A model generated the notes under the pieces. That model saw only the letters and a program-made list of their open reading frames with translations, made no database searches and was not told where the DNA came from. From the sequence record NC_049851.1: a stretch of 64,000 nucleotides of DNA; one strand, given 5' to 3'. Position 1 is the stretch's first letter; every line of letters begins with the position of its first letter. Positions 10,781 to 63,688 of the stretch are shown here, piece by piece. The position numbers were made by a program, and so were the translations under genes.

Positions 10781-11698
10781 ATGGAGAAAGTTATGGGAAC
10801 GTCAAAATGGGACGCCGCTTCTATAGCGGCCGAAGCAAAGCACTACACACAACCGACAGAATTCCGTCGAGGGTCCCATGGCGCGTACGTAGCGGCTCAG
10901 CGCCTAGGGATACTGGACGAGGTGTGCAAACACATGACGTTCAGACGCAAGCTCACGAAGGAGCACGTACTGAATGTCGCGCGTTCATACAAAACCCGCG
11001 TGGACTTTGCGCGCGGTGCAGAATCGGAATACGGGACCGCTCGAAAGAACGGATACCTAGATGAAGCGTGTGCACACATGCAACGAAAACTCAAGTGGAC
11101 CGAATCCAGTGTAGCAGCAGAGGCCGCAAAGTACACGAAGCGCTATGACTTTGAACTCGGCAGTCCGAACGCCTACAGCGCAGCCAAACGACTTGGCATC
11201 TATGATCAAGTATGTAGCCATATGGAATACAGCAAGCGGCATAGACTGACGCTCACGGAGATTCGCAAAATAGCAAAAACGTACAAGACGCGCAAGGAAT
11301 TCCAGACCGGTGACACCAGCGCGTATAACTGCGCAATCCGCAACGAGTGGCTTGATTCCGTGTGCGCCCATATGGAACGCGGGGCTACCGGCTTCAACAA
11401 TGACAAGCCCGGCACACTATACCAGATACTTCTCACGACTCCTACGGGCACGCGTCTATGGAAGATAGGCATTACGAACGGTCCCGTCACCAAACGGCTT
11501 GCTTCAATGGGCGTTCCACGGAACGTACACGCCGAAGTTGTGTGCACCGTGCATTTCCAAAACGGCAAGGAAGCACGACAACTAGAAACAAAGCTGCACG
11601 CACGAGGAAAGCGTCGCGGAGTGCACTACCAAGGCGAGCCCATCCTACGCAGCGGCAACACAGAATTGTTCCTGAAGCCGCTGATTAAACTCACGTGA
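10781..11698 (+). mobile_element. free-standing GIY-YIG-like (T5orf172-type) homing endonuclease with four N-terminal repeats
   Basis: Four ~47-aa repeats (A..Y..R.EF..G...AY..A.R.G.LD.VC.HM) then GTLYQI..KIGITN..KRL..ELF; inverted relative to all neighbours. Confidence 0.65.
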
Positions 11699-12290
11699 GG
11701 TTGTGGTGATAGGTAACCTCGTTGTTGCCGATCAATTCCTTGATCTCACGGAAGGAGAACGGACGATACTCACCCAGCACCTTGATGGAATTGTCCCAAC
11801 CAATGTCAAAGATGCGGCGTTTGCTTAGCTCGGCCATCGATTCACCGTAACCGCTACCGTGCAGATGACCATGCAGCATCCACGATCCATGCTTCGCTTT
11901 ATTCCAAGCAAGTTCGGGGTGGTGGTTGAGCACAATGTTCACGCCGTCGTGCTTGATGTACAGGCGATGCTCGTGCACTTCCTTGAACAAACCGGACGAT
12001 TTGTAGAAATCGACCAAACGGTCGTCGTGATTGCCACAGATCAGGAATTTGTTCGGTGTTTCGATCCGTTCGATCAAAGCTGCTGCTTCCCACTTGGAAC
12101 CGAACGCAATGTCGCCACCGAAGTAGATGACGCCACGCGGACCTACCGTCTCGTTGATACGGGACACGATCCACTGGTTGTGGCTGGGCATGTCGCTGAA
12201 CAGGATACCGCGACGCGTGTACTGTAGGATCGCGTTGTGGTTGAAATGCAGGTCTGCCGTGAACCACGGCCCGTTGTCTTTTTGTGTCAT
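11691..12290 (-). CDS. calcineurin-like metallophosphoesterase
   Basis: FTADLHFNH, GGD, GNHD, HGHLH motifs. Confidence 0.85.
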   Translation of the reverse strand: MTQKDNGPWFTADLHFNHNAILQYTRRGILFSDMPSHNQWIVSRINETVGPRGVIYFGGDIAFGSKWEAAALIERIETPNKFLICGNHDDRLVDFYKSSGLFKEVHEHRLYIKHDGVNIVLNHHPELAWNKAKHGSWMLHGHLHGSGYGESMAELSKRRIFDIGWDNSIKVLGEYRPFSFREIKELIGNNEVTYHHNLT

Positions 12291-12326
12291 GTTGCCTCCT
12301 TATTCAAGGTATTGCAGTTTAATCAG

Positions 12327-12755
12327 TCACACGCGCTCGCGCAATCCTTTCTCCCAATTGCACGGGCCGCACATGGTCGTCATGTTATGTTGCGCATCGG
12401 CCCCGCCATTAGCACGACTCACCGTGTGATCGTGCGTGAAGATCACTTCTTCACCGTCACGAAAGCCCCACATGTTCATGTGGAACGGACCATCCGAGCC
12501 TTTCTTGGTGGCCGTGCGCTCAACCGCGAAATGGGTGGCTTCCAGACCGCATGACGAGCACGTGGTGCCATGGTTGGCGAAGCAGCGCAGACGCTTGCTG
12601 GTCGTGTGGACCTCCAGACCGGGGGCGACTTCAGTGCGGCGCTCTTTCTCCCGCAACTTCATGTCAGCGACGATGGCGCGGAGGCCGGTGCCCAGTTCGA
12701 GAGTGGCGATACGTTCGTAGTTGCCGCAGCGATTGCTGATTTTCGAGATTTGCAT
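12327..12755 (-). CDS. HNH endonuclease
   Basis: CSSC...DHTVSRANGGADAQHNMTTMCGPCN; start at ATG behind GGAGG. Confidence 0.8.
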   Translation of the reverse strand: MQISKISNRCGNYERIATLELGTGLRAIVADMKLREKERRTEVAPGLEVHTTSKRLRCFANHGTTCSSCGLEATHFAVERTATKKGSDGPFHMNMWGFRDGEEVIFTHDHTVSRANGGADAQHNMTTMCGPCNWEKGLRERV

Positions 12756-12784
12756 TTTGGGCCTCCATAAATTCGATGACCCAA

Positions 12785-12821
12785 AGTATAAAGGGGCTGA
12801 CAGTTTCCCGTCAACCCCTTT
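12785..12821 (-). promoter_or_regulatory. sigma70-type promoter embedded in a hairpin
   Basis: TTGACG-18-TATACT; stem AAAGGGGCTGAC/GTCAACCCCTTT. Confidence 0.55.
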
Positions 12822-12825
12822 CACA

Positions 12826-13191
12826 TCACAGGTACGCGATCCGGATTCGGAGCACGAGGCGAACCGCCAAGTCGAAGATCACGGTCGCTGCCGCGATCTC
12901 GGGGTGGCTCCCGAACTGTACCAGTGTCGCGACGGCAACGGCCTGCGCAATCAACTGGAGAAGCATCCAAGCCTGCTCGTCGCGGCTGTTCTCGTAGCCA
13001 TCAACATCGTGCTTCAGGTTATACGGGAACGTGAAGAACGCGTAGAACAGGGTGAGCGCCGGATAGCCGAACCCCACGATCAGGTACGCGACCTCCACCA
13101 TATGAGCGGCCGGGAGACCGAAGCCCACGACGTAGGCGATGAAGAACGCGAATGCGATGAACGCGGCGCGGAACGTGTCTTTCGTCAGCAT
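12826..13191 (-). CDS. membrane protein
   Basis: Four hydrophobic helices. Confidence 0.6.
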   Translation of the reverse strand: MLTKDTFRAAFIAFAFFIAYVVGFGLPAAHMVEVAYLIVGFGYPALTLFYAFFTFPYNLKHDVDGYENSRDEQAWMLLQLIAQAVAVATLVQFGSHPEIAAATVIFDLAVRLVLRIRIAYL

Positions 13192-13193
13192 AG

Positions 13194-13664
13194 TTACTCC
13201 TTGGTCGGGACAGCAGCCAGCGCAGTGCGCACCAGCGCGCTTGCCTGACGGCCATCGAACTTGCCGGTGTGGTTCGTGTTCAGAAACCCCATCAGCGAGC
13301 CGATATCGGCCCTGACGCCGGAATCCAGCGCGCCCTTGATCGCGGTCACGATTTCCGTCTGGCTCATCTGTGCCGGGGCGTAGCGTTCGAGGACGATGCG
13401 CTCCTGAGCCAGTGTCGTGAGTTGGGCTGCACGCTCTGCGGTCAGGCCGTGCAGGTCGGCACCGATGGCTTCGCTCGTTTCCTTGTTGCGGTCCATGAAC
13501 TTCTTGACCAGCGCTACGGTCTCGGCGTCCGTTGTCTGCTCACGCTGCTTGTTCTTGGCGATGGTACTGGCTTCGCCCAGCAGCGTGGTCAGCAGCGTCG
13601 CTTCCACCGTGTTCTTGGCCTTGCGAGCCGCCACTTGGTCCTGCTTGATTTGTTCGATGAGCAT
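13194..13664 (-). CDS. GatB/YqeY domain protein
   Basis: LIEQIKQDQVAARKAK..ATLLTTLLGE..E..VLERYAP.QMS..EI..I......DIGSLMG. Confidence 0.8.
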   Translation of the reverse strand: MLIEQIKQDQVAARKAKNTVEATLLTTLLGEASTIAKNKQREQTTDAETVALVKKFMDRNKETSEAIGADLHGLTAERAAQLTTLAQERIVLERYAPAQMSQTEIVTAIKGALDSGVRADIGSLMGFLNTNHTGKFDGRQASALVRTALAAVPTKE

Positions 13665-13674
13665 GTTTTCTCCT

Positions 13675-14901
13675 TTATCCCTTGATACACATGACTTGCT
13701 TGAGGGTGGCCACAACGTCGACCAGTTCCGACTGCGCTTCCATCACCGTGTCGATGTCCTTGTAGGCACCCGGGATTTCGTCCAGAACACCGCCGTCCTT
13801 ACGGCACTCGACGCCCTTGGTTTGTTCCGCGAGGTCTTGCTCCGTGAACACCTTCTTGGCCTTCGTGCGGCTGAACTTGCGGCCTGCGCCGTGCGAACAC
13901 GAACAGTAGGCCGCCGTATGGCCCTTGCCACACACGATGAACGACTTCGCGCCCATCGAGCCCGGGATGATCCCGAGTTGGCCCTTCTGCGCCGACACCG
14001 CGCCCTTACGCGTCACCAGCATCGAACGGCCATCGTGCACTTCTTGCGACAGGTAATTGTGGTGGCAGTTGATCGCCTGATCGACGAGCGTGAACGCCGG
14101 GAGCTTGCGGCGCAGTGCACGCAACGTCAACAGCAGCATGAAGTCGCGGTTGAGTCGTGCGTATTCCTGCGCCCACGACATGCCTTCCACGTACTCGTCG
14201 AACTCGGGCGTCCCGGCCTCGAACCACGCGAGGTCCTTGTCGGCCAGTTGCATACCCTTGATCGATGCGTTGCGGGCAGCGAGTTCCGTCGAGATTTTCC
14301 CGATGATGTTGCCGATCCCGCGCGACCCCGAGTGCAGCATCACCCACACGTTCTGCTCGGTGTCGACGCACAGTTCGATGAAGTGGTTGCCGTTGCCGAG
14401 CGTGCCCATCTGCTTCGGAAGCTTGGCCTCGTCGAACTTGCTGCCGATGCGCTGACGCACCTTCAGGCCGTCGAATCGCGCGAACAGGACGTCGCGTGCT
14501 GCTTCCAGCGCACGACCCTCGTTCCCTTCGTGGAAGAAGCGGACTTCGCGCTTGTGCGTGTCGAAGCCGACCGGAACATCGCGCTCGATTTGAAGGCGCA
14601 CGTCCCGGAGCGAGTCCGGAAGTTGGTGAGCCTTGAGCGAGGTCTTGACCGCACACATGCCGCAGCCGATGTCGACGCCTACCGCAGCCGGGATCACAGC
14701 CGCGTTCAGCGGTATCACGGAGCCAACCGTGGCACCGAGGCCAAAGTGCACGTCGGGCATGACGGCCATCGGACCTGCCAAGATCGGCAGGTTCGTGATG
14801 TTTTGAATCTGCTTCAGCGCTTCCTGCTCGACTTCCATTTCACCGGTCCAGAAGCGGGCCTTGCCGCCCATCATTTGACCGTACAGTTCGTTCTGTTGCA
14901 T
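13675..14901 (-). CDS. rtcB: RNA ligase RtcB
   Basis: MPDVH.G.GATVG, GVDIGCG, GTLGNGNHFIE, HSGSRG, HHNY, RKGA, IPGSMG, HGAGR, DEIPGAYK. Confidence 0.95.
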   Translation of the reverse strand: MQQNELYGQMMGGKARFWTGEMEVEQEALKQIQNITNLPILAGPMAVMPDVHFGLGATVGSVIPLNAAVIPAAVGVDIGCGMCAVKTSLKAHQLPDSLRDVRLQIERDVPVGFDTHKREVRFFHEGNEGRALEAARDVLFARFDGLKVRQRIGSKFDEAKLPKQMGTLGNGNHFIELCVDTEQNVWVMLHSGSRGIGNIIGKISTELAARNASIKGMQLADKDLAWFEAGTPEFDEYVEGMSWAQEYARLNRDFMLLLTLRALRRKLPAFTLVDQAINCHHNYLSQEVHDGRSMLVTRKGAVSAQKGQLGIIPGSMGAKSFIVCGKGHTAAYCSCSHGAGRKFSRTKAKKVFTEQDLAEQTKGVECRKDGGVLDEIPGAYKDIDTVMEAQSELVDVVATLKQVMCIKG

Positions 14902-14911
14902 ACCTTCCTCC

Positions 14912-15373
14912 TTACGAGTCTTGTTCGAGTGCGCCCGAATACGCGTTCCGGACACCGATGCAGCGTGCGATGGCCGCCATGTCGTTGTTCCAGTACTTCC
15001 CGTGGTCGATCATGTCGATCATGGGGTTCGTGGACCAGAAGATGCCCGCGCATTTGTGCGGCTCGCGGTTGACCGGGGCCTCACGGTCGATGACTGCTGC
15101 GTAGTACATCATGATCAGCTTGTCGCCAGACACATGCGTGTCCGACGCGAAGTGCATGGCCATCGGGTCGGTCTCGCGCAATTCGACGCCAACCTCTTCA
15201 CGCATTTCGCGGATGATCGCGGCTTTCGGGTCTTCGCCTTCTTCGATAACGCCACCGGGCAGCACAAAGAAGTCGGAGCCCGGGTCCTTGATGCGGCGCT
15301 GGAGCAGTACGTCGCCTGTTCCCTTGTCGATCAGGACGCAGGCGACGCCCGCGATGTGCTTCGGAATGGTCAT
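14912..15373 (-). CDS. Nudix hydrolase
   Basis: GGVIEEGEDPKAAIIREMREEVG Nudix box. Confidence 0.88.
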   Translation of the reverse strand: MTIPKHIAGVACVLIDKGTGDVLLQRRIKDPGSDFFVLPGGVIEEGEDPKAAIIREMREEVGVELRETDPMAMHFASDTHVSGDKLIMMYYAAVIDREAPVNREPHKCAGIFWSTNPMIDMIDHGKYWNNDMAAIARCIGVRNAYSGALEQDS

Positions 15374-18300: not shown

Positions 18301-20146
18301 TGCTGGAGAACCCGTCACCGATACCCGTGGTATGACGCGTAAGGTAACCCATGCTGCGCGCTTTTGCAAGGTCTCGTCCGAGACGCGGGCAGTTGTCGGC
18401 ACCGAAAGGCATCACGTTGAACGGGGCGTCTGTGCGCTCGATGTACCTGTCGACGACATAGCGGTTCAGGACATCGGCCTCACGCTCGTGATCCACCAAG
18501 TCCAGAACCACGTCGATACGATCAGCCAGTGTCATTGCCATCGCAGCGCCTCTGCTTCGGTATCGGTGACGGGGATCGCGTCGACCAGATCGTAGGCAAC
18601 TTCTTTCGCCTCCATCACGTCCATGAATTTGGCCAGCGTGCTACCGACCCACGTACGCCGCTTGCCGTTGACTCGGTACACAACTTTCAGTTCCATACCA
18701 GCAGCCCCTTACAGGTGTTGAGCGGCCATGCGGCGCGCGGCCTCACGGATGCTGTTTTCGATGACTACGGCCTTAACCTCGCCTTCGAACTGCTCGTGCG
18801 CTTGCGCATGGATTGTCTTCGCGTTGATGCCGCAGCGCGCGAGATCGAATGCGAAGGCGACGATGCGCACATCGAAGTTGTCGACCTTGGTGTTGGCAAT
18901 GCTATGCAGCGAGGAAGAGGTCATACTTGGTCTCCTTTTCAAGAACCCTGTAACCGTTGACAAAATAGTGGGTGGGCGTTCGCGCACCCTTGATCTGGAC
19001 GATGACACGCACCGACTCGTGCGAACGTGGGCGGTACTCCAGCAAGTGGGCTTCGCGACCGTCGCGGGTCACGATGCGCGCACCAGTCGAAGCCGCGTCC
19101 ACGTCAAAAGGCAAAAGCCGAATCGTCATCACCGACCTCCATAACGAGAGAAGACAGTGTACAACGATTCGGCTTCGGGTGCAACTTATTCGTAGAAGAT
19201 CACGATGTCGACCACATCACCCTTCCCACTGGAGTGCGCGTAGTACCGGAACTGCGTGCCATCGTAACTCAGGTCCCAGTCGTGCATTCGGTCGTCGATG
19301 AAAACCGTACGATGATGAACCTTGCCCATTTCGTTCAATCCTTGCTCATCGAGCAAAAGACAGATCGAATCGACACGGCCTTTCACACACTTTGGCAACT
19401 CGTACCACTGGAAGCTGTCGTTCTGGACGCCCGTGACGATCACGCACTTCATTGCTTGCCATGCCTATAGAGGTGGCAGTGCGCTTCGTACGCTTGGCGT
19501 GCGAGCCCGATGGCCGCGTCCAGTTCGCGCGACGCGTGGTCCACGTGCAGCGTCGAAGACAGGACACCCTTGGTCTCGACCGTGAGTTTCGCCTTATACG
19601 TCAGCGTCTTGTCGTCGACCGAGATCACGAGCGCTGCGCCGTTCTTCGTGTCGTCGAACAGGACATACTCACCATCAACCTTGTCCTTGTAGACACTATC
19701 GGCAACGACACCGCCGATGGTCGAGTACAGGACAGTCATGCCCTTCTGGATCAGGGCCTCGCGCCACGCGGTGTGGAACGCGCGCAACTCGCTGTTCATT
19801 TCGGTAACACGTTCGCGTGCCTTCTTGCGGATGCTGTCGAGAACGGGGGTGTCGATACGCATTAGCTGCTCTCCTTGTCAAACTTCATGATGTCGATGTG
19901 TACGCCGATGGCTTCGTAGCTCTGCGATGCGTACACGGCCACGGCGTCGTCTACGATCAGGTACTCGTAGACGAGTTCCCCACCGTCTACCGGACGGCCC
20001 GTCAGGTAGACCACAACGTCTTCCAGCTTTGTGCCGTTCACGTTGGGCTTACGTGCGTACTGCGTGGCACCCTTCTCGATCCACCACTTGACACCCTGCT
20101 CGTTGATGAACATGGGTTCCGTATTGCGCAGATTCATGAAGCTCAT
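15370..20146 (-). other. run of small hypothetical ORFs (15370-15681, 15662-15922, 15922-16182, 16239-16478, 16496-17029, 17017-17325, 17322-17531, 17528-17749, 17746-18207, 18188-18541, 18532-18696, 18709-18924, 18902-19132, 19186-19452, 19449-19862, 19862-20146)
   Basis: Tightly packed with ATGA/TAATG overlaps and RBSs; internal promoter TTGCAC-17-TACACT at 19156-19184; 18188-18541 ends in a wHTH-like YRLTDMGR. Confidence 0.6.
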
Positions 20147-20439
20147 GCAGCCTCCTGTTGTGTTGCGGACGTGGCACATACCCACTCACTGGGTACGAAC
20201 CTGATACGTCCTTGAGGTGAAGTCAAGAACAGGGCCATGGCCGGGCTTATCTCCCGACCCTCCCTGCTCGGCGCTGGGTCACACTTCTCGAACCCGAGTT
20301 CCGGGTTGAGCGAATCGTCTAGATCACGGGCTCTCTCCCAACCGTTAAGCCAGAGGGAACGCGCGACGCCGGATTCAGGATTTTCATGTTGCCGTACACC
20401 ATCCCAGTATGCCTCGTAACCGGCGCGACGTGCGCCCAC
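20143..20439 (-). CDS. ribosome modulation factor (Rmf)-like protein
   Basis: RAGYEAYWDG....ENP......RSLWLNGWERA matches the RMF pattern GY.AG..G.....CPY....RS.WLGGW. Confidence 0.5.
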   Translation of the reverse strand: MGARRAGYEAYWDGVRQHENPESGVARSLWLNGWERARDLDDSLNPELGFEKCDPAPSREGREISPAMALFLTSPQGRIRFVPSEWVCATSATQQEAA

Positions 20440-20441
20440 GG

Positions 20442-20923: not shown

Positions 20924-20994
20924 GCAATCTCCTAATCAGTTGATGCACGTATTGTACACGGATCACACACAATTGCAAGCGGGAAACACAAAAC

Positions 20995-51749: not shown

Positions 51750-51896
51750 ATGGAAGATCAACCCATCAAACTCACGGAAGCTGAGACCGAACGCTTCCTC
51801 GAAACACTGAAATCGCCGCCCCCGCCGAACGCGGCACTCGTCGAGGCGATGCGCAAATACCGGGAACAGGAGGAAGCAAGTGGCCGAAATCAATAA
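51750..51896 (+). CDS. 48-aa DUF1778 (AtaR/TacA antitoxin) C-terminal-like peptide, absent from the ORF track
   Basis: MEDQPIKLTEAETERFLETLKSPPPPNAALVEAMRKY...; RBS AGGAAA. Confidence 0.65.
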   Translation: MEDQPIKLTEAETERFLETLKSPPPPNAALVEAMRKYREQEEASGRNQ

Positions 51897-53483: not shown

Positions 53484-53487
53484 CCTG

Positions 53488-53516
53488 TTGACGGTGTAGT
53501 AAAGACAGCGTATAGT
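53488..53516 (+). promoter_or_regulatory. composite promoter for the tRNA cluster
   Basis: TTGACG-17-TATAGT with GTAGTAAAGA inside the spacer. Confidence 0.75.
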
Positions 53517-53525
53517 TCAGGACTC

Positions 53526-53602
53526 GGGCGGTTAGCTCAGGGGTTAGCAGCGTTCGGCTCATAACCGAGGGGTCGCGGGTTCGAATCCCGCACCGCCCAC
53601 CA
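53526..53602 (+). tRNA. tRNA-CAU (Met, or Ile2 if lysidine-modified)
   Basis: Cloverleaf; TTCGG-CT-CAT-AA-CCGAG; TTCGAAT; encoded CCA. Confidence 0.9.
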
Positions 53603-53658
53603 CACAGAATAGGAGGCAATCATGAGTAGATTCTAGTGAACCAACTGGAGGTGTTCTC

Positions 53659-53946
53659 ATGAAAGCAAAAGCGTTTTACCATCGTGTTTGTAACTACGGC
53701 CCGGGCGGCTACCACTGCCCGTGCTGTGGTCCCGCACCGAGCATGCGTCGTAAGGAGCGTCAGCAACAACGACGCAAGTTCCATCGACTGCTTGACGTTC
53801 TGGACAAGTTTGACACCGAAGTCGAAATCGAATACGACAACCTCGTGCTCAACGATTTCGACGACGAGCGTCACGACTACTACAACGGCTGGGGCGGTGA
53901 TCCCAGCCTGCACGATGAGTGGAAGGATTGGAAGAAGGCAGCTTGA
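53659..53946 (+). CDS. hypothetical protein with CPCC motif
   Basis: RBS GGAGG. Confidence 0.6.
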   Translation: MKAKAFYHRVCNYGPGGYHCPCCGPAPSMRRKERQQQRRKFHRLLDVLDKFDTEVEIEYDNLVLNDFDDERHDYYNGWGGDPSLHDEWKDWKKAA

Positions 53947-54010
53947 CCGTACTGCACCGCAAAGCCTTAGATGCGGTGTGCCGCGAGAACGTGAGCGGTG
54001 CAGTGCACCT

Positions 54011-54096
54011 GCCCGGGTGGCGGAATTGCTAGACGCGACGGACTCAAAATCCGTTGGCCCTAGGCCGTGTGGGTTGGAGTCCCACCCCGGGCACCA
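54011..54096 (+). tRNA. tRNA-Leu(CAA) with C19/G56 elbow
   Basis: ACGGA-CT-CAA-AA-TCCGT, long variable arm, CCA. Confidence 0.9.
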
Positions 54097-54098
54097 TC

Positions 54099-54137
54099 GC
54101 GAGGGTGGCGAAATTGGTAGACGTGGCGAAATTGGTA
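54099..54137 (+). pseudogene. 5' fragment of a tRNA-Leu with a 15-nt direct duplication
   Basis: GCGAGGG-TG-GCGAAATTGGTAGACG; GTGGCGAAATTGGTA at 54105-54119 and 54123-54137. Confidence 0.8.
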
Positions 54138-54177
54138 ATCCCCAATTTTATTTCAGTAACCAACGTGGAGAAGATTC

Positions 54178-54888
54178 ATGCTAGAACTGAAAAACGACAT
54201 GCCGATTTTGGCCAAGAAGTTGTCCGGTGTGTATGGTCACGAGATTCGTATCATCGGGCCGTACGTGGACAAGAGAAACGGGCGTAAGCTCGTGGACATA
54301 AAGGGTGCGCCCCGTTCCTCGGGAATTAACAAAACCGTGCAGCTTGCACGTGCGCGCCTAGAAGTAAAGCTTGGTCGACGCCTTGTCGATGACGAGACTG
54401 TCGACCACAAGAACAACGATTGCACGGATGACCGTCCGAGCAATCTTCAGTTGCTGACGCACGCAGAGAACTCGGCAAAGCAGACGAAGGAAACGCGTAG
54501 TCGCTCGGCTGAAGCGTCTCGCACCGCCGAGGCGCGTTCCGCTAACAGCAAACGCAATACAGGTGAGAAGAATCAAGCTGCCGTCCTTACCGATACTGAA
54601 GTGAAAAGGTTTCGCACACTTTTCAGTAAGGGTAAAATGACGGTCAAGCAAATCGAAGATGCGTCGGAGTTGACAAATCGTTCGGTTCGTAATATGCTTG
54701 ACGGCCTGTCGTACAAAACGGCAGGCGGACCGCTCCGCATAGCAGGCTCTGTTGGTCGCGCATCCTCGTTGTCAGAGAAGCACAGGCAGTACATAGCGAA
54801 TCACGCAGAACTGTCAGCCGCGCAGATTGCAGAAGAACTTGACGTGAGTAGGTATGCAGTGATACGATACCGACGCACGCTTAACTAA
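54178..54888 (+). mobile_element. HNH homing endonuclease
   Basis: LARARLEVKLGR.L...ETVDHKNND.TDDRPSNLQLLT.AEN plus a C-terminal HTH-like region. Confidence 0.85.
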
Positions 54889-54889
54889 C

Positions 54890-54976
54890 GGGAGTGTGCT
54901 GGAATTGGTAGACGGAACGGATTTAGATTCCGTAGGCCGCAAGGTCGTGTGGGTTCGAATCCCATCACTCCCACCA
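54890..54976 (+). tRNA. tRNA-Leu(TAG)
   Basis: ACGGA-TT-TAG-AT-TCCGT, variable arm, CCA. Confidence 0.92.
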
Positions 54977-55006
54977 CTACACGAAATTTTAGTTAAAGGT
55001 ATTTAA

Positions 55007-55246
55007 GTGCCGCCAAGCATCGAACAGGTAAAACTTATACTCAGATCAGCAGCATTGTCTCCGAGCAGCAGTCAGTTGTCTATTTCTGGCTTTGACGATA
55101 TCATGAAGGCAGCAGAGGAAGCCTATTGTGGAGATAGCCGAGCCATGCTCACAAACGTCCGGGAAATTGCCTTGCAGTTTCCGGACAATACGATGATGAT
55201 GACGATTTTGGCGCTGTATTCTGAATCCATGCTGAGTATGCATTAA
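55007..55246 (+). CDS. hypothetical protein (79 aa)
   Basis: GTG-start ORF, lower GC than the flanks. Confidence 0.45.
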   Translation: MPPSIEQVKLILRSAALSPSSSQLSISGFDDIMKAAEEAYCGDSRAMLTNVREIALQFPDNTMMMTILALYSESMLSMH

Positions 55247-55260
55247 GCGCAATCCCCACA

Positions 55261-55310
55261 GTCCTGCCGGTCGAAAGGCCGTGAGGGTTCGAATCCCTTT
55301 CCTCGCACCA
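55261..55310 (+). pseudogene. 3' fragment of a tRNA-Leu
   Basis: GT-CCTGC-C-GGTC-GAAA-GGCC-GT-GAGGG-TTCGAAT-CCCTT-TCCTCGC-ACCA; TCCTCGC pairs with GCGAGGG at 54099. Confidence 0.85.
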
Positions 55311-55404
55311 CTTTGGATTGTAGGCGTAAATCGAGCGGGACTTCCCCACCCACTCGATTAGGTATGGTACACCTTATAGACCGTCGCCTACAATCCAAAG
55401 TGGT
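55307..55404 (+). ncRNA. unknown structured RNA, 20-bp perfect closing stem
   Basis: ACCACTTTGGATTGTAGGCG (55307-55326) / CGCCTACAATCCAAAGTGGT (55385-55404), internal hairpin AATCGAG/CTCGATT. Confidence 0.55.
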
Positions 55405-55477
55405 TGTGGTAAAGATGTAGTGTGCTTTGCCTTTGAAGCGCGGGCGCTGTGGTTCTCAGGCCACGACAGCGCCCAAC

Positions 55478-55553
55478 GCCGGTTTAGCTCAGTTGGTAGA
55501 GCAGCGCCCTTGTAAAGCGCAGGTCACGGGTTCGAGCCCTGTAACCGGCACCA
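55478..55553 (+). tRNA. tRNA-Thr(TGT)
   Basis: GCGCC-CT-TGT-AA-AGCGC; CCA. Confidence 0.92.
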
Positions 55554-55574
55554 CTAAACAATAACAACGAGGTT

Positions 55575-56138
55575 GTGATGAATACGCATGAGGCTTACGA
55601 GATCGTCGATAGACTGACGCCGGTATCGGTCAGGAACCTCGAAGACGCGTACGTACGGTTCATGGAAATGGCGCTTCTGGTCGATCCACACCCGGAGACT
55701 GAAGACCGGGCCACACGGGATCGTGAGACATACACTGAATTCCTGCTACCGCCCGACGAGAACGGCAATCCCGTGATTTCGGTCCCGGGCATGCACCAGT
55801 TTCTGTCCAAGATCACGGGCCATCCACTACAAACCTGCGTAGCCTTCGACTATGTTGACTTCCATCGCGTGCACGGCACGACGGTAGAGGACGCGGAACT
55901 CGCTGGCTACGTTTAAGGACGGACCATGGAAGAAGACGCATACAGGTTCAGTGTGGCAGCGCTCAAAAGCGAGTACGACGCTGAACTGCTCGAACTGCGC
56001 AAGACAGTGCTTGAAGGTCGCGGTGACGTTGCTGGGTTTATCAAACTCAAGGAGTCGCTTGACTCAAGGCTGAAGGACCGCGTTAGCGCGGTTACTGGCG
56101 CACGCAGTCAAACACAGAACAAGTTGCTGTACAACTGA
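55575..56138 (+). other. hypothetical ORFs 55575-55916 and 55926-56138
   Basis: ORF track, RBSs. Confidence 0.6.
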
Positions 56139-56144
56139 ACAAGA

Positions 56145-56221
56145 CTCCGCTTAGCTCAGCCCGGTAGAGTACGTGATTTGGGATCACGGGGTCGCAGGTT
56201 CAAATCCTGTAGCGGAGACCA
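56145..56221 (+). tRNA. tRNA-Pro(TGG)
   Basis: CGTGA-TT-TGG-GA-TCACG; C1:G72, A73, CCA. Confidence 0.92.
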
Positions 56222-56239
56222 CACAACATAGGAGGTGTC

Positions 56240-57512
56240 TTGGAAACCACTTACGACTACAGCCTTACGTTCGACCTGACTGACATCATCGTGTTCGTTC
56301 TGATCGCGATCATGATCAAGATGGTCATCGACATCGTGCGTGAGCGCATGCGAATACGCAGGCTCCGACGCGACATGGGGGCAAACGGCAATCTTCCGTG
56401 CATCACGATCTCGGGTAACGACGATGTGTCGATCTCGGGTCTTGTGTACGAAGGGCGGCCCATCCCCTCGGTCGATATCAAGAACAAAGCGCTGTTCGTC
56501 GACGGTCAGTTCAAGCGCCGCCTCGCCCGCAACAGCCGTGTCTACAACCGTGGCATCGGAATCTTCGCGGACGGCAAGTACATGGGGTAATACCATGCGC
56601 AGTATCTTTCACATTTCGGTCGGCTCCGATAACTGGAACCCGACCGAGGACGAACTTGCGGGCATCGTCCGCAAGTTCAAAGAACTGGAAGCAAAGCAGG
56701 GTCAGCGTCAACAGCTTCCCGATACCCGCAAGATCATCCACATCAGTGTGGGTGCTGAGGATTGGACGCCTACCGCAGACGAACTGTTGGCCATCGTCAA
56801 TCAGTTCCAGTATGCAGACCTCGATCCGCTCGGTGGGTGGATTGCGACGCGTCACGGTATCAAAGTCACTGACATCGAGACCGCCGCACAGCCCACGCTG
56901 GTGGTGAACGGCACGACCCACGAAAGCGAGGCTCGTGCTTCGCTACGTCAGGACTCCATCGACCGGCTTGAGGCCATCCGCGAAAACCTGCGTACGTTCA
57001 AGCTGAGCACGCTCGATGTCGACACACTGATCAATCGGTTGTCGACGTATCAACTTTAACCGAAAAGCTTAGGACAACAAATGAAACAACTCAACACGCA
57101 ACGCCGCTTCGAATGCCTGACACCGGAAGGTACATGGGTCTCCGTGCACTGGGAGCAACTGGAACCGGGCGACATGATCCGCCTCCTGCCCGCTGTCGGC
57201 ATCACCGAGGACGTTCCGCCGACCGACGTATTCGTCGTCATGGACACGCCTACCGTGAACGTGCGTTCGGTGAACGAAATCCGTGCCGAACAAGCAGCCG
57301 CAGCGCAGCGTGAAGCGCTGGCCAACACGGAAGGTGTCGATGCTATCCAAGCAGCGCAGCGCGATATCGACGCAGCCGTCGAGCAGATGAAGCCGGTAAC
57401 AGAGGCCGTGGCAAAGGTGGCGCACGCAGTAAAGGCCAAGAAGACGCCGAGCCCGAAGGTTCCGGCACCGGCACGCAAGCCGCGCACGCGCAAGGTCGCG
57501 ACGCCGAAGTAA
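56240..57512 (+). other. hypothetical ORFs 56240-56590 (N-terminal TM), 56595-57059 (internal repeat), 57081-57512 (basic tail)
   Basis: ORF track, RBSs. Confidence 0.6.
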
Positions 57513-57624
57513 TGGCCGTGTAGTAAATAGGTTGGGTGAGCGCGGAAACGCAATCCCCAATTTGAGTTGTACAGAAAACTAGTGCTGGTTGCCGGATGCA
57601 GTTGTTACCCGGAACAGCACACGC

Positions 57625-57714
57625 GGATGGGTGCCCGAGTGGCTAAAGGGGGCAGACTGTAAATCTGCCGGGCCTCAGTGTCCTACGTTGGTTCGAATCC
57701 AACCTCATCCACCA
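57625..57714 (+). tRNA. tRNA-Tyr(GTA)
   Basis: GCAGA-CT-GTA-AA-TCTGC, long variable arm, CCA. Confidence 0.92.
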
Positions 57715-57767
57715 GAACATAAGCAGGAGCCCTGAGCATCAGGGCATCAGGGCAACAAGGAAAAGCA

Positions 57768-58049
57768 ATGCCGATTAAGCCGCTGTATGACAAGGTGGTG
57801 GTGCGTACCACCGACACAGACCGTACGACTGTAGGGGGCATCGTGATCCCCGCTGCTTCGCTCAAGGCGAATCAGGCTGTCGTGGTCGCTGTCGGTGACG
57901 GCCACCTTATGCAAGACGGTACGCTTCGACCGCTGTCCGTGAAGGCAGGCGACGTTGTGTACCTCTCGCATGAAGGCTCCGAGATCGAAGTCAACGGTGA
58001 AAAGCTTCGCGTCTTCATCGAAGGCGATCTGATAGGAGTCCTCAACTAA
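57768..58049 (+). CDS. groES: co-chaperonin GroES
   Basis: IKPLYDKVVV, GGIVIP, VVAVGDG, VKAGDVV, GSEIEVNGE. Confidence 0.92.
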   Translation: MPIKPLYDKVVVRTTDTDRTTVGGIVIPAASLKANQAVVVAVGDGHLMQDGTLRPLSVKAGDVVYLSHEGSEIEVNGEKLRVFIEGDLIGVLN

Positions 58050-58058
58050 GCAGTACAT

Positions 58059-58135
58059 TCCCCGTGAGCAAGCTAGGCGACTGCACCGGACTGTTAATCC
58101 GGCATTGCGTGGTTCGAATCCACGACGGGGAGCCA
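58059..58135 (+). tRNA. tRNA-Asn(GTT)
   Basis: CCGGA-CT-GTT-AA-TCCGG; CCA. Confidence 0.92.
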
Positions 58136-58139
58136 ATCA

Positions 58140-58242
58140 TGAATAGGTCATGAGTAAGGCAGATCACTCAATCCGGAAACTCAAAAGGTAATCCGGGTAG
58201 CAATGAGCATCCTGTAAGCCGAGACGATGATTGACTTATTCA
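58140..58242 (+). ncRNA. unknown structured spacer RNA
   Basis: Closing stem TGAATAGGTCA/TGACTTATTCA with internal hairpins TGAGT/ACTCA and CCGGA/TCCGG. Confidence 0.45.
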
Positions 58243-58244
58243 GA

Positions 58245-58320
58245 GCGCGGGTAGCTCAGTTGGTAGAGCACCGGACTGAAAATCCGGGTGTCGCTGGTTC
58301 GAGTCCAGCCCTGCGCACCA
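58245..58320 (+). tRNA. tRNA-Phe(GAA)
   Basis: CCGGA-CT-GAA-AA-TCCGG; CCA. Confidence 0.93.
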
Positions 58321-58322
58321 GC

Positions 58323-58438
58323 GTTGTGATCGAGTGAAAATCGTAGGAAGGGGCCGATTACCCTGACCGCAATCTGTAGGTGGACCGGCTGGCCCTCATC
58401 CTGCTAGTGTAGATTTTTCCCATGTGGTTTCGATCAAC
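58323..58438 (+). ncRNA. unknown rod-like RNA
   Basis: Nested stems TGATCGA/TCGATCA, GAAAATC/GATTTT, GTAGGA/TCCTGC, GGGGCC/GGCCCT separated by bulges. Confidence 0.45.
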
Positions 58439-58539
58439 TAATCATTGTGTGGTTGTAGCGCACTAAATCAGACGGCCGGGCTCCGGAGCCCGCGTACCAT
58501 ACCACCCCGGATGGAAACCGTTGAATATTCCGGGTCGAT

Positions 58540-58616
58540 AGGGGTGTAGCCAAGTTGGTTAAGGCAACGGATTTTGATTCCGTCATGCGTAGGTTCGAAT
58601 CCTACCGCCCCTTCCA
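58540..58616 (+). tRNA. tRNA-Gln(TTG)
   Basis: ACGGA-TT-TTG-AT-TCCGT; discriminator T; CCA. Confidence 0.9.
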
Positions 58617-58694
58617 GAACACGCAGTACTGCTGCCTCCCCCTGCGGTGAAATCCCGAAGGACTTGCGGGCAGCATCGAATAATCAGGACTCCA

Positions 58695-59021: not shown

Positions 59022-59029
59022 CAAGCAGT

Positions 59030-59102
59030 CCTGAGTTAGCTTAGTGGCAAAGCAGCCGGGGTCTGGCGATGGACTACGGTTCGATTCCGTAACTCGGGGC
59101 CA
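59030..59102 (+). ncRNA. tRNA-like RNA lacking a canonical anticodon loop
   Basis: Acceptor CCTGAGT/ACTCGGG-G-CCA, D arm GCTT/AAGC, T arm TACGG-TTCGATT-CCGTA; anticodon arm GCCGG-GGT-CTGGC. Confidence 0.75.
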
Positions 59103-59287
59103 AGATTTCTGCACCGTGGGTTGACCTCCACGGTGATCCGCTAGACGCGGAGGGTCACATCTGGGTATTGCACATGCCCGCTGGCGGTCACCAGCACCTC
59201 CTTGTCGCGCGACGACCGCGATTAATGGGCTACGTCGTATAAGTGGTTGGTTGTCCTGAGCGCACTAGGGCGTTCGGGGTAGTGCAG

Positions 59288-59331
59288 AAGGGTGATAGTC
59301 TGGGTAACCGGTCTATCACCCTTTTGTTTTT
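59288..59331 (+). terminator. terminator of the tRNA cluster
   Basis: AAGGGTGATAG/CTATCACCCTT stem plus T tract. Confidence 0.75.
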
Positions 59332-59379
59332 GGTTCGTGTTATACTGAGTAGGTAGTAAATAACCAAAGGAGGTGTCAA

Positions 59380-60582: not shown

Positions 60583-60585
60583 TTG

Positions 60586-62199: not shown

Positions 62200-62208
62200 G
62201 GGGGCAGC

Positions 62209-63099
62209 ATGTCCAAACTCGTAACCGTGCAGATCAAGCCACGGTCGTTTCTTCAGAAGAAGTTCTCCGCTGGTCGCATGTGGTTCTTAGCCGAGCCCAT
62301 CACCATTGACGGGGTGCACAACGGCAACTACGAGGTTGCTATCGCGGGCGGTCGGCACGTGATCAGTGGCCGTAGCCTGAACGTTCAGACGTGGACCACT
62401 AACGAGGAACCAGTAGAGTTGCTGACGCGCCTAAACGGCTACATCTACTCGACGACACCGGGTCATGGTGACTTGATACTGCGGCCCGAGGACATCCAGC
62501 CTCCGTCACCGCCCGAGCGTACGTTCGTCATGATCGACATCGAGAGTCTGGGGCTGCGCGTAGGATCGCCTGTCCTTTCTATCGGTGCGTGTGCCATGCA
62601 ACGCGGTCTCGGCATCATCGACGAATTCAGCGTCGTGCTCGATCTTCAAGAGCAACTGGACAAGGGCGCTAAGGTAGAGGCCGACGCCTTCTACTGGTGG
62701 CTGCGCCAGCCCGAAAAGCCGCGTCTGGCCATCGCAGGCCCCGACGTGAAGTACTCGACGCTGGAAGAGGCGCGCGAGCAACTGACCCACTTCTGGGCGC
62801 GCGTAGAGGCCCACCCGTGCGTCGTGGATGGCAACGTGTTCGCGATGGCCCTAGGCAACGACTTCGACCTAGCACAACTCGACCTGTGGTTCAATGGCAA
62901 CGTGCCATGGCACTACCGCGACAAGGTGTGCCTGCGCGCCCTGATCAACACGCACCCGAACTCGGTGGTGTGGGATAGCGAGGACAACTTCGGCAAGGAT
63001 CGCGAGGACCTGCACACTGCGCTCGGGGACGCGAAGGCCCAATCCCGGATGCTCATGCGCATGATCGCCCGACATCCCGAAATCTCGCAGGTGGTGTGA
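62209..63099 (+). CDS. DEDDh 3'-5' exonuclease with N-terminal extension
   Basis: MIDIESLG, GNDFDL..L, HTALGDAKAQ. Confidence 0.82.
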   Translation: MSKLVTVQIKPRSFLQKKFSAGRMWFLAEPITIDGVHNGNYEVAIAGGRHVISGRSLNVQTWTTNEEPVELLTRLNGYIYSTTPGHGDLILRPEDIQPPSPPERTFVMIDIESLGLRVGSPVLSIGACAMQRGLGIIDEFSVVLDLQEQLDKGAKVEADAFYWWLRQPEKPRLAIAGPDVKYSTLEEAREQLTHFWARVEAHPCVVDGNVFAMALGNDFDLAQLDLWFNGNVPWHYRDKVCLRALINTHPNSVVWDSEDNFGKDREDLHTALGDAKAQSRMLMRMIARHPEISQVV

Positions 63100-63326
63100 T
63101 GACGAAGAAACAGAAGGCTCCGGGCCTGCGTCTGCAACTGCTGTCGGACGGCAGCACCGCCCAGTACCTCGAAATCTCGAAGCTGGCGACGCCGCACGTC
63201 GAGAAGGAGTTCATCCACTTCGACAAGCTGCCGGACGGCACGTGGCGTCTGCTCATCAACGTGCGTGACGAGAACGGCAAGCAGATTGCGACGCCGGACA
63301 TCCACATCATGGAGATCATGCGGTGA
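63096..63326 (+). CDS. hypothetical protein
   Basis: Coupled ORF. Confidence 0.55.
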   Translation: MMTKKQKAPGLRLQLLSDGSTAQYLEISKLATPHVEKEFIHFDKLPDGTWRLLINVRDENGKQIATPDIHIMEIMR

Positions 63327-63688
63327 GCGAGGATAGCAGTGACTGGGTAGGCGTCGATTTTGATTCGACGCTTGCTTATCTGGACGAGTGGCAAGGAAAG
63401 TTTCACCTTGGCAAGCCTATACCGGCCATGGTAGCATTCGTCCGCAGTTTGCTCGAACAGGGCAAGGAAGTGCGTGTGATGACGGCCCGGGTGTGCCCGG
63501 ACCCCGACTACACTGAAGAAGAACTCGAAGAGATTCATCGCCTAATCGAGGATTGGACTGAAGAGCATATCGGCACTCGCTTGAGCGCCACGTGTATGAA
63601 GGACCGGTACATGATCGCGCTCTTCGACGATAAGGCATTTCACGTGACCCCGAACACGGGGATCGTTCACATACCGGAGGATGAATGA
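63323..63688 (+). CDS. HAD-family phosphatase (DxDxT)
   Basis: WVGVDFDSTL, VMTAR, K, FDDK. Confidence 0.75.
   Translation: MSEDSSDWVGVDFDSTLAYLDEWQGKFHLGKPIPAMVAFVRSLLEQGKEVRVMTARVCPDPDYTEEELEEIHRLIEDWTEEHIGTRLSATCMKDRYMIALFDDKAFHVTPNTGIVHIPEDE

Follow-up and report, generated by a model that had tools for sequence, protein, structure and literature searches.

In T4, Pnkp and Rnl1 repair the tRNA-Lys cleaved by the PrrC anticodon nuclease, an example of phage enzymes healing and sealing a tRNA after its breakage by an abortive-infection nuclease. RtcB ligases join a 3'-phosphate or a 2',3'-cyclic phosphate to a 5'-OH, and homing endonucleases occur in phage tRNA clusters, SegB of T4 being one example. 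Provisioning of tRNAs and RNA repair by jumbo phages have already been described by Iyer, Anantharaman, Krishnan, Burroughs and Aravind in 2021 (PMC7824862). According to the available text of that paper, BcepSauron and BcepSaruman carry RtcB, Rnl1 and Rnl2-type ligases, and phages carry "any combination" of ligases, i.e., the systems are modular and not fixed. Phage tRNAs that evade tRNA-targeting defences differ from the host tRNAs in the anticodon loop (PMC10264068; PMC11555353), and orphan antitoxins serve phages as counter-defences, such as the DarG-like proteins (PMC11825919, PMC10760071), Dmd of T4 against RnlA (PMC8266594) and TifA against ToxN (PMC9391042).

The window analysed here comprises 64,000 nucleotides of the Burkholderia jumbo phage BcepSauron (positions 62,001-126,000 of record NC_049851.1) and is part of its early/middle gene region. 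Taken singly, the components (Table 1) are real and far beyond chance, although the matches of gp148 and gp221 are weak, and their grouping as a single unit is not itself an observation. In both components and logic they agree with the systems in the available text of PMC7824862, in which phage tRNAs, together with RtcB and ATP-dependent ligases, Nudix proteins and phosphoesterases (HAD, calcineurin-like, HD, 2H), counter host attacks on the translation apparatus. However, YqeY, which BcepSauron carries, has no occurrence in that text, and neither a DUF1778-type peptide nor a tRNA-like element, both present here, is described in it. An earlier note on this DNA had proposed multiple counter-measures against host attack on tRNA, which is reasonable and, for the tRNAs and ligases, has been published for BcepSauron in the same text. 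We consider it somewhat probable that these genes represent a collection of separate modules, each acquired on its own, by which translation RNAs are kept functional in the infected cell, and not one co-evolving system.

Table 1. Features of the BcepSauron window (positions counted from the first nucleotide of the window)
Feature	Position	Strand	Evidence
gp126, calcineurin-type metallophosphoesterase	11691..12290	-	phrog_547 E=1.4e-43
gp127, HNH endonuclease	12327..12755	-	Pfam HNH E=7e-5
gp128, small hydrophobic protein in the RtcB row	12826..13191	-	no family match
gp129, YqeY/GatB-tail-like protein	13194..13664	-	Pfam YqeY E=1.7e-14
gp130, RtcB RNA ligase	13675..14901	-	Pfam RtcB (PF01139) E=1.8e-119
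gp131, Nudix hydrolase, first gene of the RtcB row	14912..15373	-	Pfam NUDIX E=1.1e-17
gp148, weak Rmf/CrpP-like N-terminal 40 aa and 58-aa tail	20143..20439	-	Pfam RMF E=4.4e-4
gp160, Rnl5-type ATP-dependent RNA ligase	25412..26530	-	TIGR02306 E=1e-56
gp198, 48 aa, stand-alone C-terminal half of a TacA/DUF1778 antitoxin	51750..51896	+	PF08681 TacA1 26.3 bits
Nine tRNA genes and interspersed small ORFs	53526..58616	+	ARAGORN and Rfam, 43-75 bits
Inserted cassette: HNH endonuclease gp205, foreign tRNA-Leu(TAG) at 54890-54976, gp206	54178..55246	+	comparison with relatives
Scar, 3' part of ancestral tRNA-Leu(TAG)	about 55259..55311	+	comparison with Saruman
Perfect 20-bp hairpin and inner stem	55307..55404	+	folding, shuffles
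tRNA-like element	59029..59102	+	RF00005 40.3 bits, threshold 29
Structured spacer, terminator hairpin at its end	59103..59322	+	fold z=-4.7, 0/200 shuffles fold as well
gp221, minimal HAD-like phosphatase candidate	63323..63688	+	DFDST motif I

The RtcB gene row and the other RNA ligases

The Nudix, RtcB, YqeY, gp128, HNH and metallophosphoesterase genes form a co-directional row with consecutive gaps of 2-70 nt, in which the Nudix gene is separated from that of RtcB by 10 nt on the same strand. Gene order, protein and RNA identities and intact catalytic motifs are directly observed. The RtcB protein matches its family profile over the full length (positions 1-426, 400.2 bits against a cut-off of 27), and its motifs PDVHFG, DIGCG, GNGNHF, HSGSRG, HHN and SHGAGR align to those of Thermus thermophilus RtcB (PDB identifier 2EPG), with the metal-binding Asp, Cys and His residues and the GMP-accepting His of the SHGAGR-type guanylylation motif all present. 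With this row, the phage could directly rejoin tRNAs or rRNA after cleavage by metal-independent nucleases, i.e., at breaks with 2',3'-cyclic phosphate and 5'-OH ends. The YqeY protein gp129 spans positions 2-143 of the 143 in the PF09424 profile with 54.6 bits (cut-off 27). It has 100% identity to its BcepSaruman counterpart and is probably a tRNA-binding helper in this row. In unrelated phages, YqeY is encoded inside the tRNA cluster of Ceto and directly after that of RSP15, and in phiM7 and Vibrio phage 2.275.O it is found close to peptidyl-tRNA hydrolase and macro domain genes.

The metallophosphoesterase gp126 has no Pfam match at E<=0.01, but carries the motifs DLH (DxH, residue 13), GD (59), GNHD (86) and GHLH (GHxH, 141) and matches a known structure (PDB identifier 1XM7) with E=3e-6, and we regard it as a candidate RNA 3'-end healing enzyme. 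The HNH endonuclease gp127 is probably a mobile insert beside the phosphoesterase gene; the same pairing of metallophosphoesterase and HNH genes is seen in phiM7. The other phosphatase candidate, gp221, has only the DFDST motif and weak PHROG matches (phrog_415, E=3e-5, and phrog_1238) with no match in Pfam, and whereas RtcB, the second ligase, YqeY and gp126 are confirmed, its assignment to the HAD phosphatases is less certain.

That second ligase, gp160, scores 192 bits against the TIGR02306 profile (cut-off 151) and combines an N-terminal OB domain (PF21189, residues 5-97) with a nucleotidyltransferase domain (PF09414, residues 180-361). It aligns to the Naegleria RNA ligase NgrRnl (PDB identifier 5COT) with E=4e-80, its K-M-D-G corresponding to the K-L-D-G (KxDG) of that enzyme. 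By these similarities it is an intact Rnl5 ligase of the Naegleria/Deinococcus type (DraRnl/NgrRnl), and it is predicted to seal 3'-OH/5'-phosphate nicks in folded RNA. A third ligase, Rnl1 (at 228.8 kb in the record), and a nucleotidyltransferase are encoded elsewhere in the genome, about 103 kb beyond the window. The polynucleotide kinase profile used gave no match, and hence the ATP-dependent ligases could repair only breaks that already have a 5'-phosphate. BcepSauron differs from T4 in this respect and in the ligases themselves, as those in the window are Rnl5 and an RtcB, which needs no end healing, whereas the T4-type Rnl1 is located outside it.

An orphan TacA-type peptide upstream of the tRNA cluster

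The peptide gp198 is the newest piece of the window. [quoted passage not shown] Full-length DUF1778 proteins align to it at their C-termini, the invariant toxin-binding motif being kept, and its PDB matches are a TacA peptide (PDB identifier 7AK9_C) and a DUF1778 protein (PDB identifier 7ZG5_C). All plasmid matches obtained with gp198 by tblastn are DUF1778 genes beside GNAT genes. Unlike these bacterial relatives, which have a GNAT neighbour, neither gp197 nor gp199 has a GNAT match. The gene has a Shine-Dalgarno-like AGGCAGG upstream of its start codon, and its dN/dS of 0.30 indicates purifying selection. These profile, alignment, plasmid and PDB matches give good support to the earlier description of gp198 as a mimic of GNAT antitoxins. 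The probable role of gp198 is to bind and inhibit the GNAT toxins of the host, enzymes that acetylate aminoacyl-tRNA.

Of 121 host-family genomes, 35 encode DUF1778 antitoxins, and a TacT (GNAT) toxin acting on Gly-tRNA has been characterised in B. cenocepacia (PMC9177977), which makes a target of this family in the host plausible; the identity of gp198 to the nearest host-family antitoxins sampled is only 41-45%. The TacA1 profile found nothing in five other large phages, the genome of BcepSauron itself serving as the positive control (24.4 bits in a six-frame search with PF08681). As with the DarG-like proteins, Dmd and TifA, only the antidote half is present, the toxin and the autoregulatory DNA-binding function both being missing. 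However, gp198 is a putative antidote of fragment size from the TacA/DUF1778 family, whose GNAT toxins are not catalogued as phage defence: PADLOC v2 has no entry for GNAT/DUF1778 modules as anti-phage defence.

Turnover in the tRNA cluster and a tRNA-like element

ARAGORN and Rfam agree on nine tRNA genes in the whole BcepSauron genome, all in this cluster (Met-CAT, Leu-CAA, Leu-TAG, Thr-TGT, Pro-TGG, Tyr-GTA, Asn-GTT, Phe-GAA and Gln-TTG), near the start of which lies a promoter-like site at 53488-53516. The cluster would supply extra tRNAs, its genes being exchanged by recombination and homing endonucleases. Like the phages with evading tRNAs, BcepSauron has its own set that could replace depleted host tRNAs. 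However, the anticodon loops of seven of the nine tRNAs are identical to those of the host-family isoacceptor, and the departures lie elsewhere (C19:G56 in tRNA-Leu(CAA), U73 in tRNA-Gln, anticodon stems). Together with C32 in tRNA-Phe and A37 in Sauron's tRNA-Leu(TAG), these are isolated unusual features, and the altered recognition elements that the earlier note ascribed to replacement tRNAs are thus not general.

The sister phages Sauron and Saruman are 93% identical overall, yet their tRNA-Met, tRNA-Leu(TAG) and tRNA-Asn share only 65-75% identity, and an HNH cassette, a scar and indels are found at tRNA gene boundaries in relatives, from which we conclude that the tRNA genes turn over by cassette. 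The cassette of gp205 (with HNH_3 and HTH domains), the foreign tRNA-Leu(TAG) and gp206 is absent from BcepSaruman and the run X2 relative, and present in the run X1 and X3 relatives. Sauron's intact tRNA-Leu(TAG) is only 74% identical to Saruman's copy, whereas the partial sequence downstream of the cassette matches the 3' part of the intact gene in Saruman with 100% identity and, as a scar, is absent from Saruman. This comparison identifies it as a pseudogene remnant: the ancestral tRNA-Leu(TAG) was cut short by an HNH cassette bringing a replacement gene. As in other phage tRNA clusters with homing endonucleases, an endonuclease gene lies between tRNA genes and alleles of the region have been swapped between related phages; the case differs from that of SegB in the type of enzyme (HNH with HTH domains) and in that the insertion brought a foreign tRNA and left a truncated ancestral copy. 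The 20-bp hairpin, in the ancestral arrangement directly 3' of tRNA-Leu(TAG), has a minimum free energy of -50.3 kcal/mol (z=-8.5, 0/200 shuffles fold as well) and is 94.9% identical in Saruman, with an identical stem.

The cognate codons CCA, CTA, TAC, ACA and CAA are 1.45-1.9x commoner in phage genes than in genes of a host-family proxy, and with this partial enrichment a plain codon-supply role of the tRNAs stays open. It would form part of a housekeeping explanation, in which the tRNAs mainly supply codons used more by the 58% GC phage than by its GC-rich host, the ligases and phosphoesterases act in RNA processing or nucleotide metabolism of the phage itself, and gp198 is a leftover gene fragment with no role in counter-defence. 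The seven host-like anticodon loops, which are not obviously nuclease-resistant variants, agree with it, and so does the fact that we know of no defence target for BcepSauron and its host. However, the equally cognate ATG, TTG, AAC and TTC are not enriched over the proxy, the codons most enriched in the phage (AAA, TGT, ACT, ATA and GTA) have no phage tRNA, and the purifying selection, retained toxin-binding motif and ribosome-binding site of gp198 argue against a leftover fragment. RtcB and Rnl-type ligases are also not known to take part in the normal maturation of bacterial or phage RNA. Such a role likewise finds no support in the available text of PMC7824862, and we consider the housekeeping explanation unlikely.

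The earlier note had further read decoys or fragments of tRNA shape in the window. As a decoy, the 3' fragment was rejected, its perfect match to the Saruman gene marking it as the insertion scar, whereas the tRNA-like element at 59029-59102 is real. It has a 7-bp acceptor stem, G73, an encoded CCA and normal D and T arms in a cloverleaf layout, and keeps all nucleotides of the tertiary fold, but its "anticodon" arm is aberrant, with a 5-bp stem and a 3-nt loop (GGU) in place of a seven-nucleotide loop with U33 and an anticodon; ARAGORN makes no call. It begins 8 nt past the thioredoxin stop codon, and its single difference from Saruman, a G.U to G-C change in the stem of the anticodon arm, preserves pairing. 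Together with the downstream spacer (98.8% identical in Saruman), it is a probable non-coding RNA unit of ~290 nt. Such an RNA might work with the repair enzymes, either as a decoy or sponge for toxins that target acceptor ends or as a signal for RNase P processing by which the thioredoxin mRNA receives its 3' end. The tRNA-model score, the retained tertiary-fold nucleotides and CCA, the pairing-neutral substitution, the position next to thioredoxin and the 220 nt of folded RNA ending in a terminator favour this idea. On the other hand, neighbouring genes have likewise low dS (0.024 in gp214), and a recently shared block accounts for the high conservation, no relatives were found beyond the sister phages and close kin, and the element could be a decaying tRNA gene, so that a functional role of this kind is possible but on balance doubtful.

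Distribution and arrangement of the components

Among 50,697 phage records surveyed, RtcB occurs in 699, YqeY in 35, Rnl5 in 333 and the gp126 type in 1,469, while gp198 and gp148 are confined to Sauron and Saruman, and none of the eight other YqeY-bearing lineages tested has RtcB. The earlier note, which looked to co-occurrence across jumbo phages, had itself taken independent distribution of the components as evidence against its proposal; they are independently distributed, and a single layered system is therefore not supported. One of its parts, the RMF-like protein gp148, is weakened on other grounds as well. An RMF-like motif is visible in its sequence and the Pfam match (PF04957) was obtained in a scan of 55 proteins, but the NCBIfam Rmf/CrpP model NF041886 gives 17.2 bits, below its cut-off of 28, and only residues 3-38 of the 98 match, in contrast to an RMF-domain-only protein of ~55 aa. 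Its membership in the Rmf/CrpP family is doubtful, and it has no demonstrable link to tRNA.

The proposal that the tRNAs, decoy RNAs, both ligases with the phosphatases and YqeY, the TacA mimic and the RMF-like protein evolved and act together as one coordinated layered tRNA-protection system could appeal to the retention of all components in both sister phages, to gp198 being encoded on the same strand as the tRNA cluster and 1.6 kb upstream of it, to RtcB, YqeY and the phosphoesterase being co-directional neighbours, and to a loosely similar neighbourhood in phiM7, where YqeY, peptidyl-tRNA hydrolase, macro domain, metallophosphoesterase+HNH and Rnl5 genes lie within 12 kb. Joint retention in Sauron and Saruman is compatible with cooperation, but the pair is too close to be informative. 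Moreover, the components span 52 kb in two divergent gene blocks, with topoisomerase, helicase and recombination (replication) genes interspersed, and the further repair genes for Rnl1 and the nucleotidyltransferase are far outside the window. The tRNA fragment is a scar, the RMF-like match is sub-threshold, and the GNAT toxin characterised in B. cenocepacia acts on Gly-tRNA (PMC9177977), whereas the phage set has no tRNA-Gly. We regard joint evolution and action of all these parts as very improbable. The substrates and defence targets suggested above for the individual modules are predictions from their sequences. Thus, rather than a demonstrable single layered system, the tRNA genes, repair genes and antitoxin-like peptide of BcepSauron are best read as counter-measures that lie scattered and have been inherited separately, and this kind of counter-measure has been described for the phage before.

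Gene layout and distribution of the components

The window is 100% identical to positions 62,001-126,000 of the Burkholderia phage BcepSauron record (NC_049851.1 / MK552141.1; 262,653 bp, host B. cenocepacia), and in the deposited annotation it consists of two divergent gene blocks (see table). The earlier note had joined tRNAs, tRNA-shaped decoys, RNA ligases, phosphatases, YqeY, a GNAT-antitoxin mimic and an RMF-like protein into one layered tRNA-protection system. The genes so grouped span approximately 100 genes, including type II topoisomerase subunits, helicases and a recombination nuclease that have no connection to tRNA, and further RNA-repair genes, namely a third ligase (gp373, T4 Rnl1 type) and the nucleotidyltransferase gp377, lie ~103 kb beyond the window. 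The proximity of gp373 to gp377 marks a second RNA-repair island of BcepSauron.

Of the 50,697 phage records searched, 699 carry RtcB, 333 the Rnl5 ligase, 35 YqeY and 1,469 a gp126-type phosphoesterase, while gp198 and gp148 are restricted to BcepSauron and its sister phage BcepSaruman. Whole-record searches for RtcB, Rnl5 and YqeY revealed RtcB and a split copy of Rnl5 in Psa21, RtcB alone in phiCbK, YqeY alone in PA5oct and RSP15, and Rnl5 together with YqeY in phiM7. TacA1 could be found in none of these five phages, with BcepSauron's own genome being detected as the positive control, and none of the eight other lineages with YqeY that were tested has RtcB. Two positive associations were observed, namely the tight RtcB gene row and a recurrent link between phage YqeY and tRNA biology. 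Since the components are distributed independently across phages, which is the observation the earlier note itself had named as speaking against it, a single layered system is not supported and is largely refuted. The components are mostly real, two of them being weak or misread, and with moderate confidence we read them as a portfolio of independent modules for the protection of translation RNAs.

Iyer et al. list RtcB, ATP-dependent ligases, HAD, calcineurin, HD and 2H phosphoesterases and Nudix enzymes, and the umbrella idea, including its modular character, is already published for this phage (PMC7824862). The umbrella hypothesis therefore adds little, since a jumbo phage equipped with tRNAs and RNA-repair enzymes to withstand host attacks on translation has been described before for BcepSauron itself. 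YqeY has no occurrence in Iyer et al., and the portions of that work considered here do not cover a TacA-type peptide or a tRNA-like RNA (PMC7824862). The gain here is a sharper parts list, from which one 'decoy' has been removed as an insertion scar.

Positions and strands of the features discussed (window coordinates unless another sequence is named)
Feature	Sequence	Positions	Strand
gp123-gp193	window	10,041-49,656	almost all - (gp125, +)
gp148, RMF-like	window	20,143-20,439	
gp164	window	28121-28630	
gp185, 'nucleotide kinase'	window	43231-43749	
gp194-gp223	window	from 50,352 onward	+
nine tRNA genes	window	53,526-58,616	
region of sister tRNA comparison	window	53526-58135	
region of sister tRNA comparison	BcepSaruman (L003)	3978-7443	
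tRNA-Leu(CAA)	window	54011-54096	
20-bp hairpin with inner 7-bp stem	window	55307-55404	
gp210, 'portal protein'	window	56595-57059	
tRNA-Asn	window	58059-58135	
tRNA-Gln	window	58540-58616	
tRNA-like element	window	59,029-59,102	
spacer after tRNA-like element	window	59103-59322	
gp218-gp223 row	window	60586-64000 (gp223 runs past the end)	
gp373 and gp377	BcepSauron record	228776-231463 (228.8-231.5 kb)	
YqeY gene of Vibrio phage Ceto	L071	5001-5408	
YqeY gene of Ralstonia phage RSP15	L009	11995-12414	

RNA-repair enzymes, YqeY and the RMF-like protein

The ligases, phosphatases and YqeY proposed earlier could largely be confirmed by profiles and motifs. The RtcB gene row is co-directional and tightly packed, and comprises the Nudix protein gp131, the full-length RtcB gp130 (E=1.8e-119) with intact metal-binding and guanylylation motifs, the YqeY protein gp129 (E=1.7e-14), the small hydrophobic protein gp128, the HNH endonuclease gp127 and the calcineurin-type metallophosphoesterase gp126, in which all four metal motifs are present. 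The second ligase, gp160, is an equivalog-level member of the Deinococcus/Naegleria Rnl5 family (E=4e-80 with PDB identifier 5COT); its N-terminal OB domain precedes a nucleotidyltransferase domain in which the KxDG lysine motif is present. The annotated 'HAD' protein gp221, however, is weakly supported; it retains motif I (DFDST) and its profile matches are weak.

Other proteins of the window were also considered. The proteins gp161 and gp159, which flank Rnl5, obtain no family assignment from Pfam, PHROGs or NCBIfam profiles. Assignment of gp164 as a 2H/Acb1-like protein is unsupported: its sequence is devoid of any HxT/S motif and has no match in Pfam, PHROGs, NCBIfam or PADLOC. Likewise, gp185 was ruled out as a polynucleotide kinase as it carries DUF3310 (T7 gp1.7 type), and is a candidate nucleotide kinase. 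We also note a row formed by the Dda-like helicase gp218, gp219, the HAD-like gp221 and the HD phosphohydrolase gp223; gp219, annotated as an 'endonuclease', has an Rv2179c-like DEDD 3'-5' exoribonuclease domain (E=1.7e-24), and the row may represent a further RNA-end processing set.

The gene neighborhoods of YqeY in unrelated phages suggest a tRNA-linked role for the phage protein. For example, the YqeY gene sits within a large tRNA cluster in Vibrio phage Ceto and immediately after one in Ralstonia phage RSP15, and in phiM7 and Vibrio phage 2.275.O it is found near genes for a peptidyl-tRNA hydrolase and a macro domain protein. Phage YqeY is now connected to tRNA genes or enzymes in several unrelated phages. 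A co-occurrence of PF09414 with YqeY (5/5) was discarded, as the model also matches control genomes that lack an Rnl2-type RNA ligase.

The RMF-like protein gp148 matches RMF and Rmf/CrpP over residues 3-38 in two libraries, but at 17 bits it falls below the curated cut-off of 28 and it carries a 58-aa extension. We found no connection of gp148 to tRNA.

tRNA genes, cassette exchange and the tRNA-like element

ARAGORN and Rfam agree on the nine tRNA genes, and the whole BcepSauron genome has no additional tRNA gene common to both. The two sister phages are 93% identical overall, and the tRNA-Leu(CAA) and tRNA-Thr genes are 100% identical between them; tRNA-Met, tRNA-Leu(TAG) and tRNA-Asn are 75%, 74% and 65% identical, respectively, with unchanged anticodons. 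In BcepSauron the D arm of tRNA-Asn is unusual, and at 43 bits this gene scores lowest of the nine with the tRNA model; BcepSaruman has a conventional tRNA-Asn at this position. The 154-aa gp210, encoded among the tRNA genes, is annotated as a 'portal protein' and has no Pfam match; this annotation looks doubtful.

In BcepSaruman, 2 nt separate tRNA-Leu(CAA) from a tRNA-Leu(TAG) that leads straight into a perfect 20-bp hairpin, whereas in BcepSauron the HNH/HTH endonuclease gp205, a different tRNA-Leu(TAG) (74% identical) and gp206 are interposed. The 3' tRNA fragment of BcepSauron, placed earlier among tRNA-shaped decoys or fragments, matches the 3' portion of the BcepSaruman tRNA-Leu(TAG) with 100% identity. 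It is therefore a truncated ancestral gene left behind when the cassette brought in its replacement, and not a decoy. Contigs of two further relatives carry both cassette and scar; a third relative has neither, and the boundaries of its tRNA genes bear other replacements. The uneven tRNA identities between the two sister phages amount to cassette-like swapping of single tRNA genes, and the scar illustrates the cassette turnover of tRNA genes at homing-endonuclease sites in these phages. The hairpin is real (fold z=-8.5) and conserved in BcepSaruman. It begins at the ACCA terminus of tRNA-Leu(TAG), belongs to the 3' flank of the ancestral gene, and could serve as a processing site (an RNase III-like substrate) or give rise to a stable small RNA.

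Altered recognition elements, proposed as a feature of the replacement tRNAs, are isolated and not a general property. The reference for the phage tRNAs was the set of 52 tRNAs of one host-family genome with 60-63% GC; as this genome is a proxy and not that of B. cenocepacia itself, the results for loops and codons alike are approximate. The anticodon loop is identical to that of the same-anticodon proxy tRNA in seven of the nine, the differences being C32 instead of U32 in tRNA-Phe and A37 instead of G37 in the imported tRNA-Leu(TAG). Outside the loop, tRNA-Leu(CAA) has a swapped elbow pair (C19/G56 versus G19/C56), which is the same in both sister phages, and tRNA-Gln has the discriminator U73 in place of G73. 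The discriminator is a known GlnRS identity position in E. coli, and U73 may be relevant given the GatB-tail-like YqeY of the same phage. A codon-supply role of the phage tRNAs is partly supported: CCA, CTA, TAC, ACA and CAA are 1.45-1.9-fold enriched in phage genes relative to the proxy, but no phage tRNA corresponds to the codons with the strongest enrichment.

The tRNA-like element is real and scores 40.3 bits with the tRNA model. Its acceptor stem has 7 bp, G73 and CCA are encoded, U8, A14 and G18G19 are present, the T loop is normal, and the anticodon arm is made of a 5-bp stem and a 3-nt loop. In favor of a structured RNA, its single difference from BcepSaruman converts a G.U to a G-C pair within the anticodon-arm stem. 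Its 98.6% conservation was dropped as functional evidence, because the synonymous divergence of the adjoining genes from BcepSaruman is very low (dS of 0.024 for gp214 and 0.088 for gp215). The following 220 nt, which likewise favor a structure, are strongly folded (z=-4.7), end in a terminator hairpin and match no Rfam family, and distant DNA searches with the element and this spacer retrieved the sister phage only. Such an RNA, with a CCA end and no anticodon, might additionally soak up enzymes whose site of action is the acceptor end of tRNA.

gp198, a TacA-type peptide

The GNAT-antitoxin mimic of the earlier note survives as half a domain: the 48-aa gp198 exceeds the gathering score of Pfam TacA1/DUF1778, but its match is confined to profile positions 44-79 of 80, and the whole ribbon-helix-helix half is missing. 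In alignments with antitoxins of Burkholderia savannae and Cupriavidus plasmids it covers only their last ~45 residues, with L, RF, L, PP-PN-AL and AM being invariant. The only meaningful PDB matches are a peptide from the TacA C-terminus and a DUF1778 protein, and a word search retrieved just two short relatives. All four plasmid tblastn matches fall inside annotated DUF1778 genes, three of which are annotated or shown to adjoin GNAT acetyltransferase genes. We take gp198 as a real gene because its dN/dS with respect to BcepSaruman is 0.30, its core motif is unchanged and it has a ribosome-binding site; its dN is the highest among 20 neighboring genes.

DUF1778 antitoxins are present in 35 of 121 sampled host-family genomes, the closest of those sampled being 41-45% identical to gp198. 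An experimentally characterized TacT toxin exists in B. cenocepacia, and this GNAT toxin acetylates Gly-tRNA almost exclusively (PMC9177977). BcepSauron has no tRNA-Gly gene, a mismatch with the known toxin target that also speaks against a single layered system, and PADLOC does not catalog GNAT/DUF1778 modules as defenses. Orphan antitoxins of phages have established precedent (PMC11825919, PMC10760071, PMC8266594, PMC9391042), among which a TacA type would be new. It is possible, though on balance doubtful, that gp198 is a functional orphan antitoxin that retains only the toxin-binding C-terminus of TacA/DUF1778 and would switch off Burkholderia GNAT toxins, whose substrate for acetylation is aminoacyl-tRNA.

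As a candidate for a first orphan antitoxin of the TacA type, gp198 is cheap and can be tested directly. Should it act as one, the GNAT/TacAT modules, which have so far been studied in the context of persistence and plasmid maintenance, would be abortive-infection defenses as well, and their tRNA-acetylating toxins would gain a role in phage defense.
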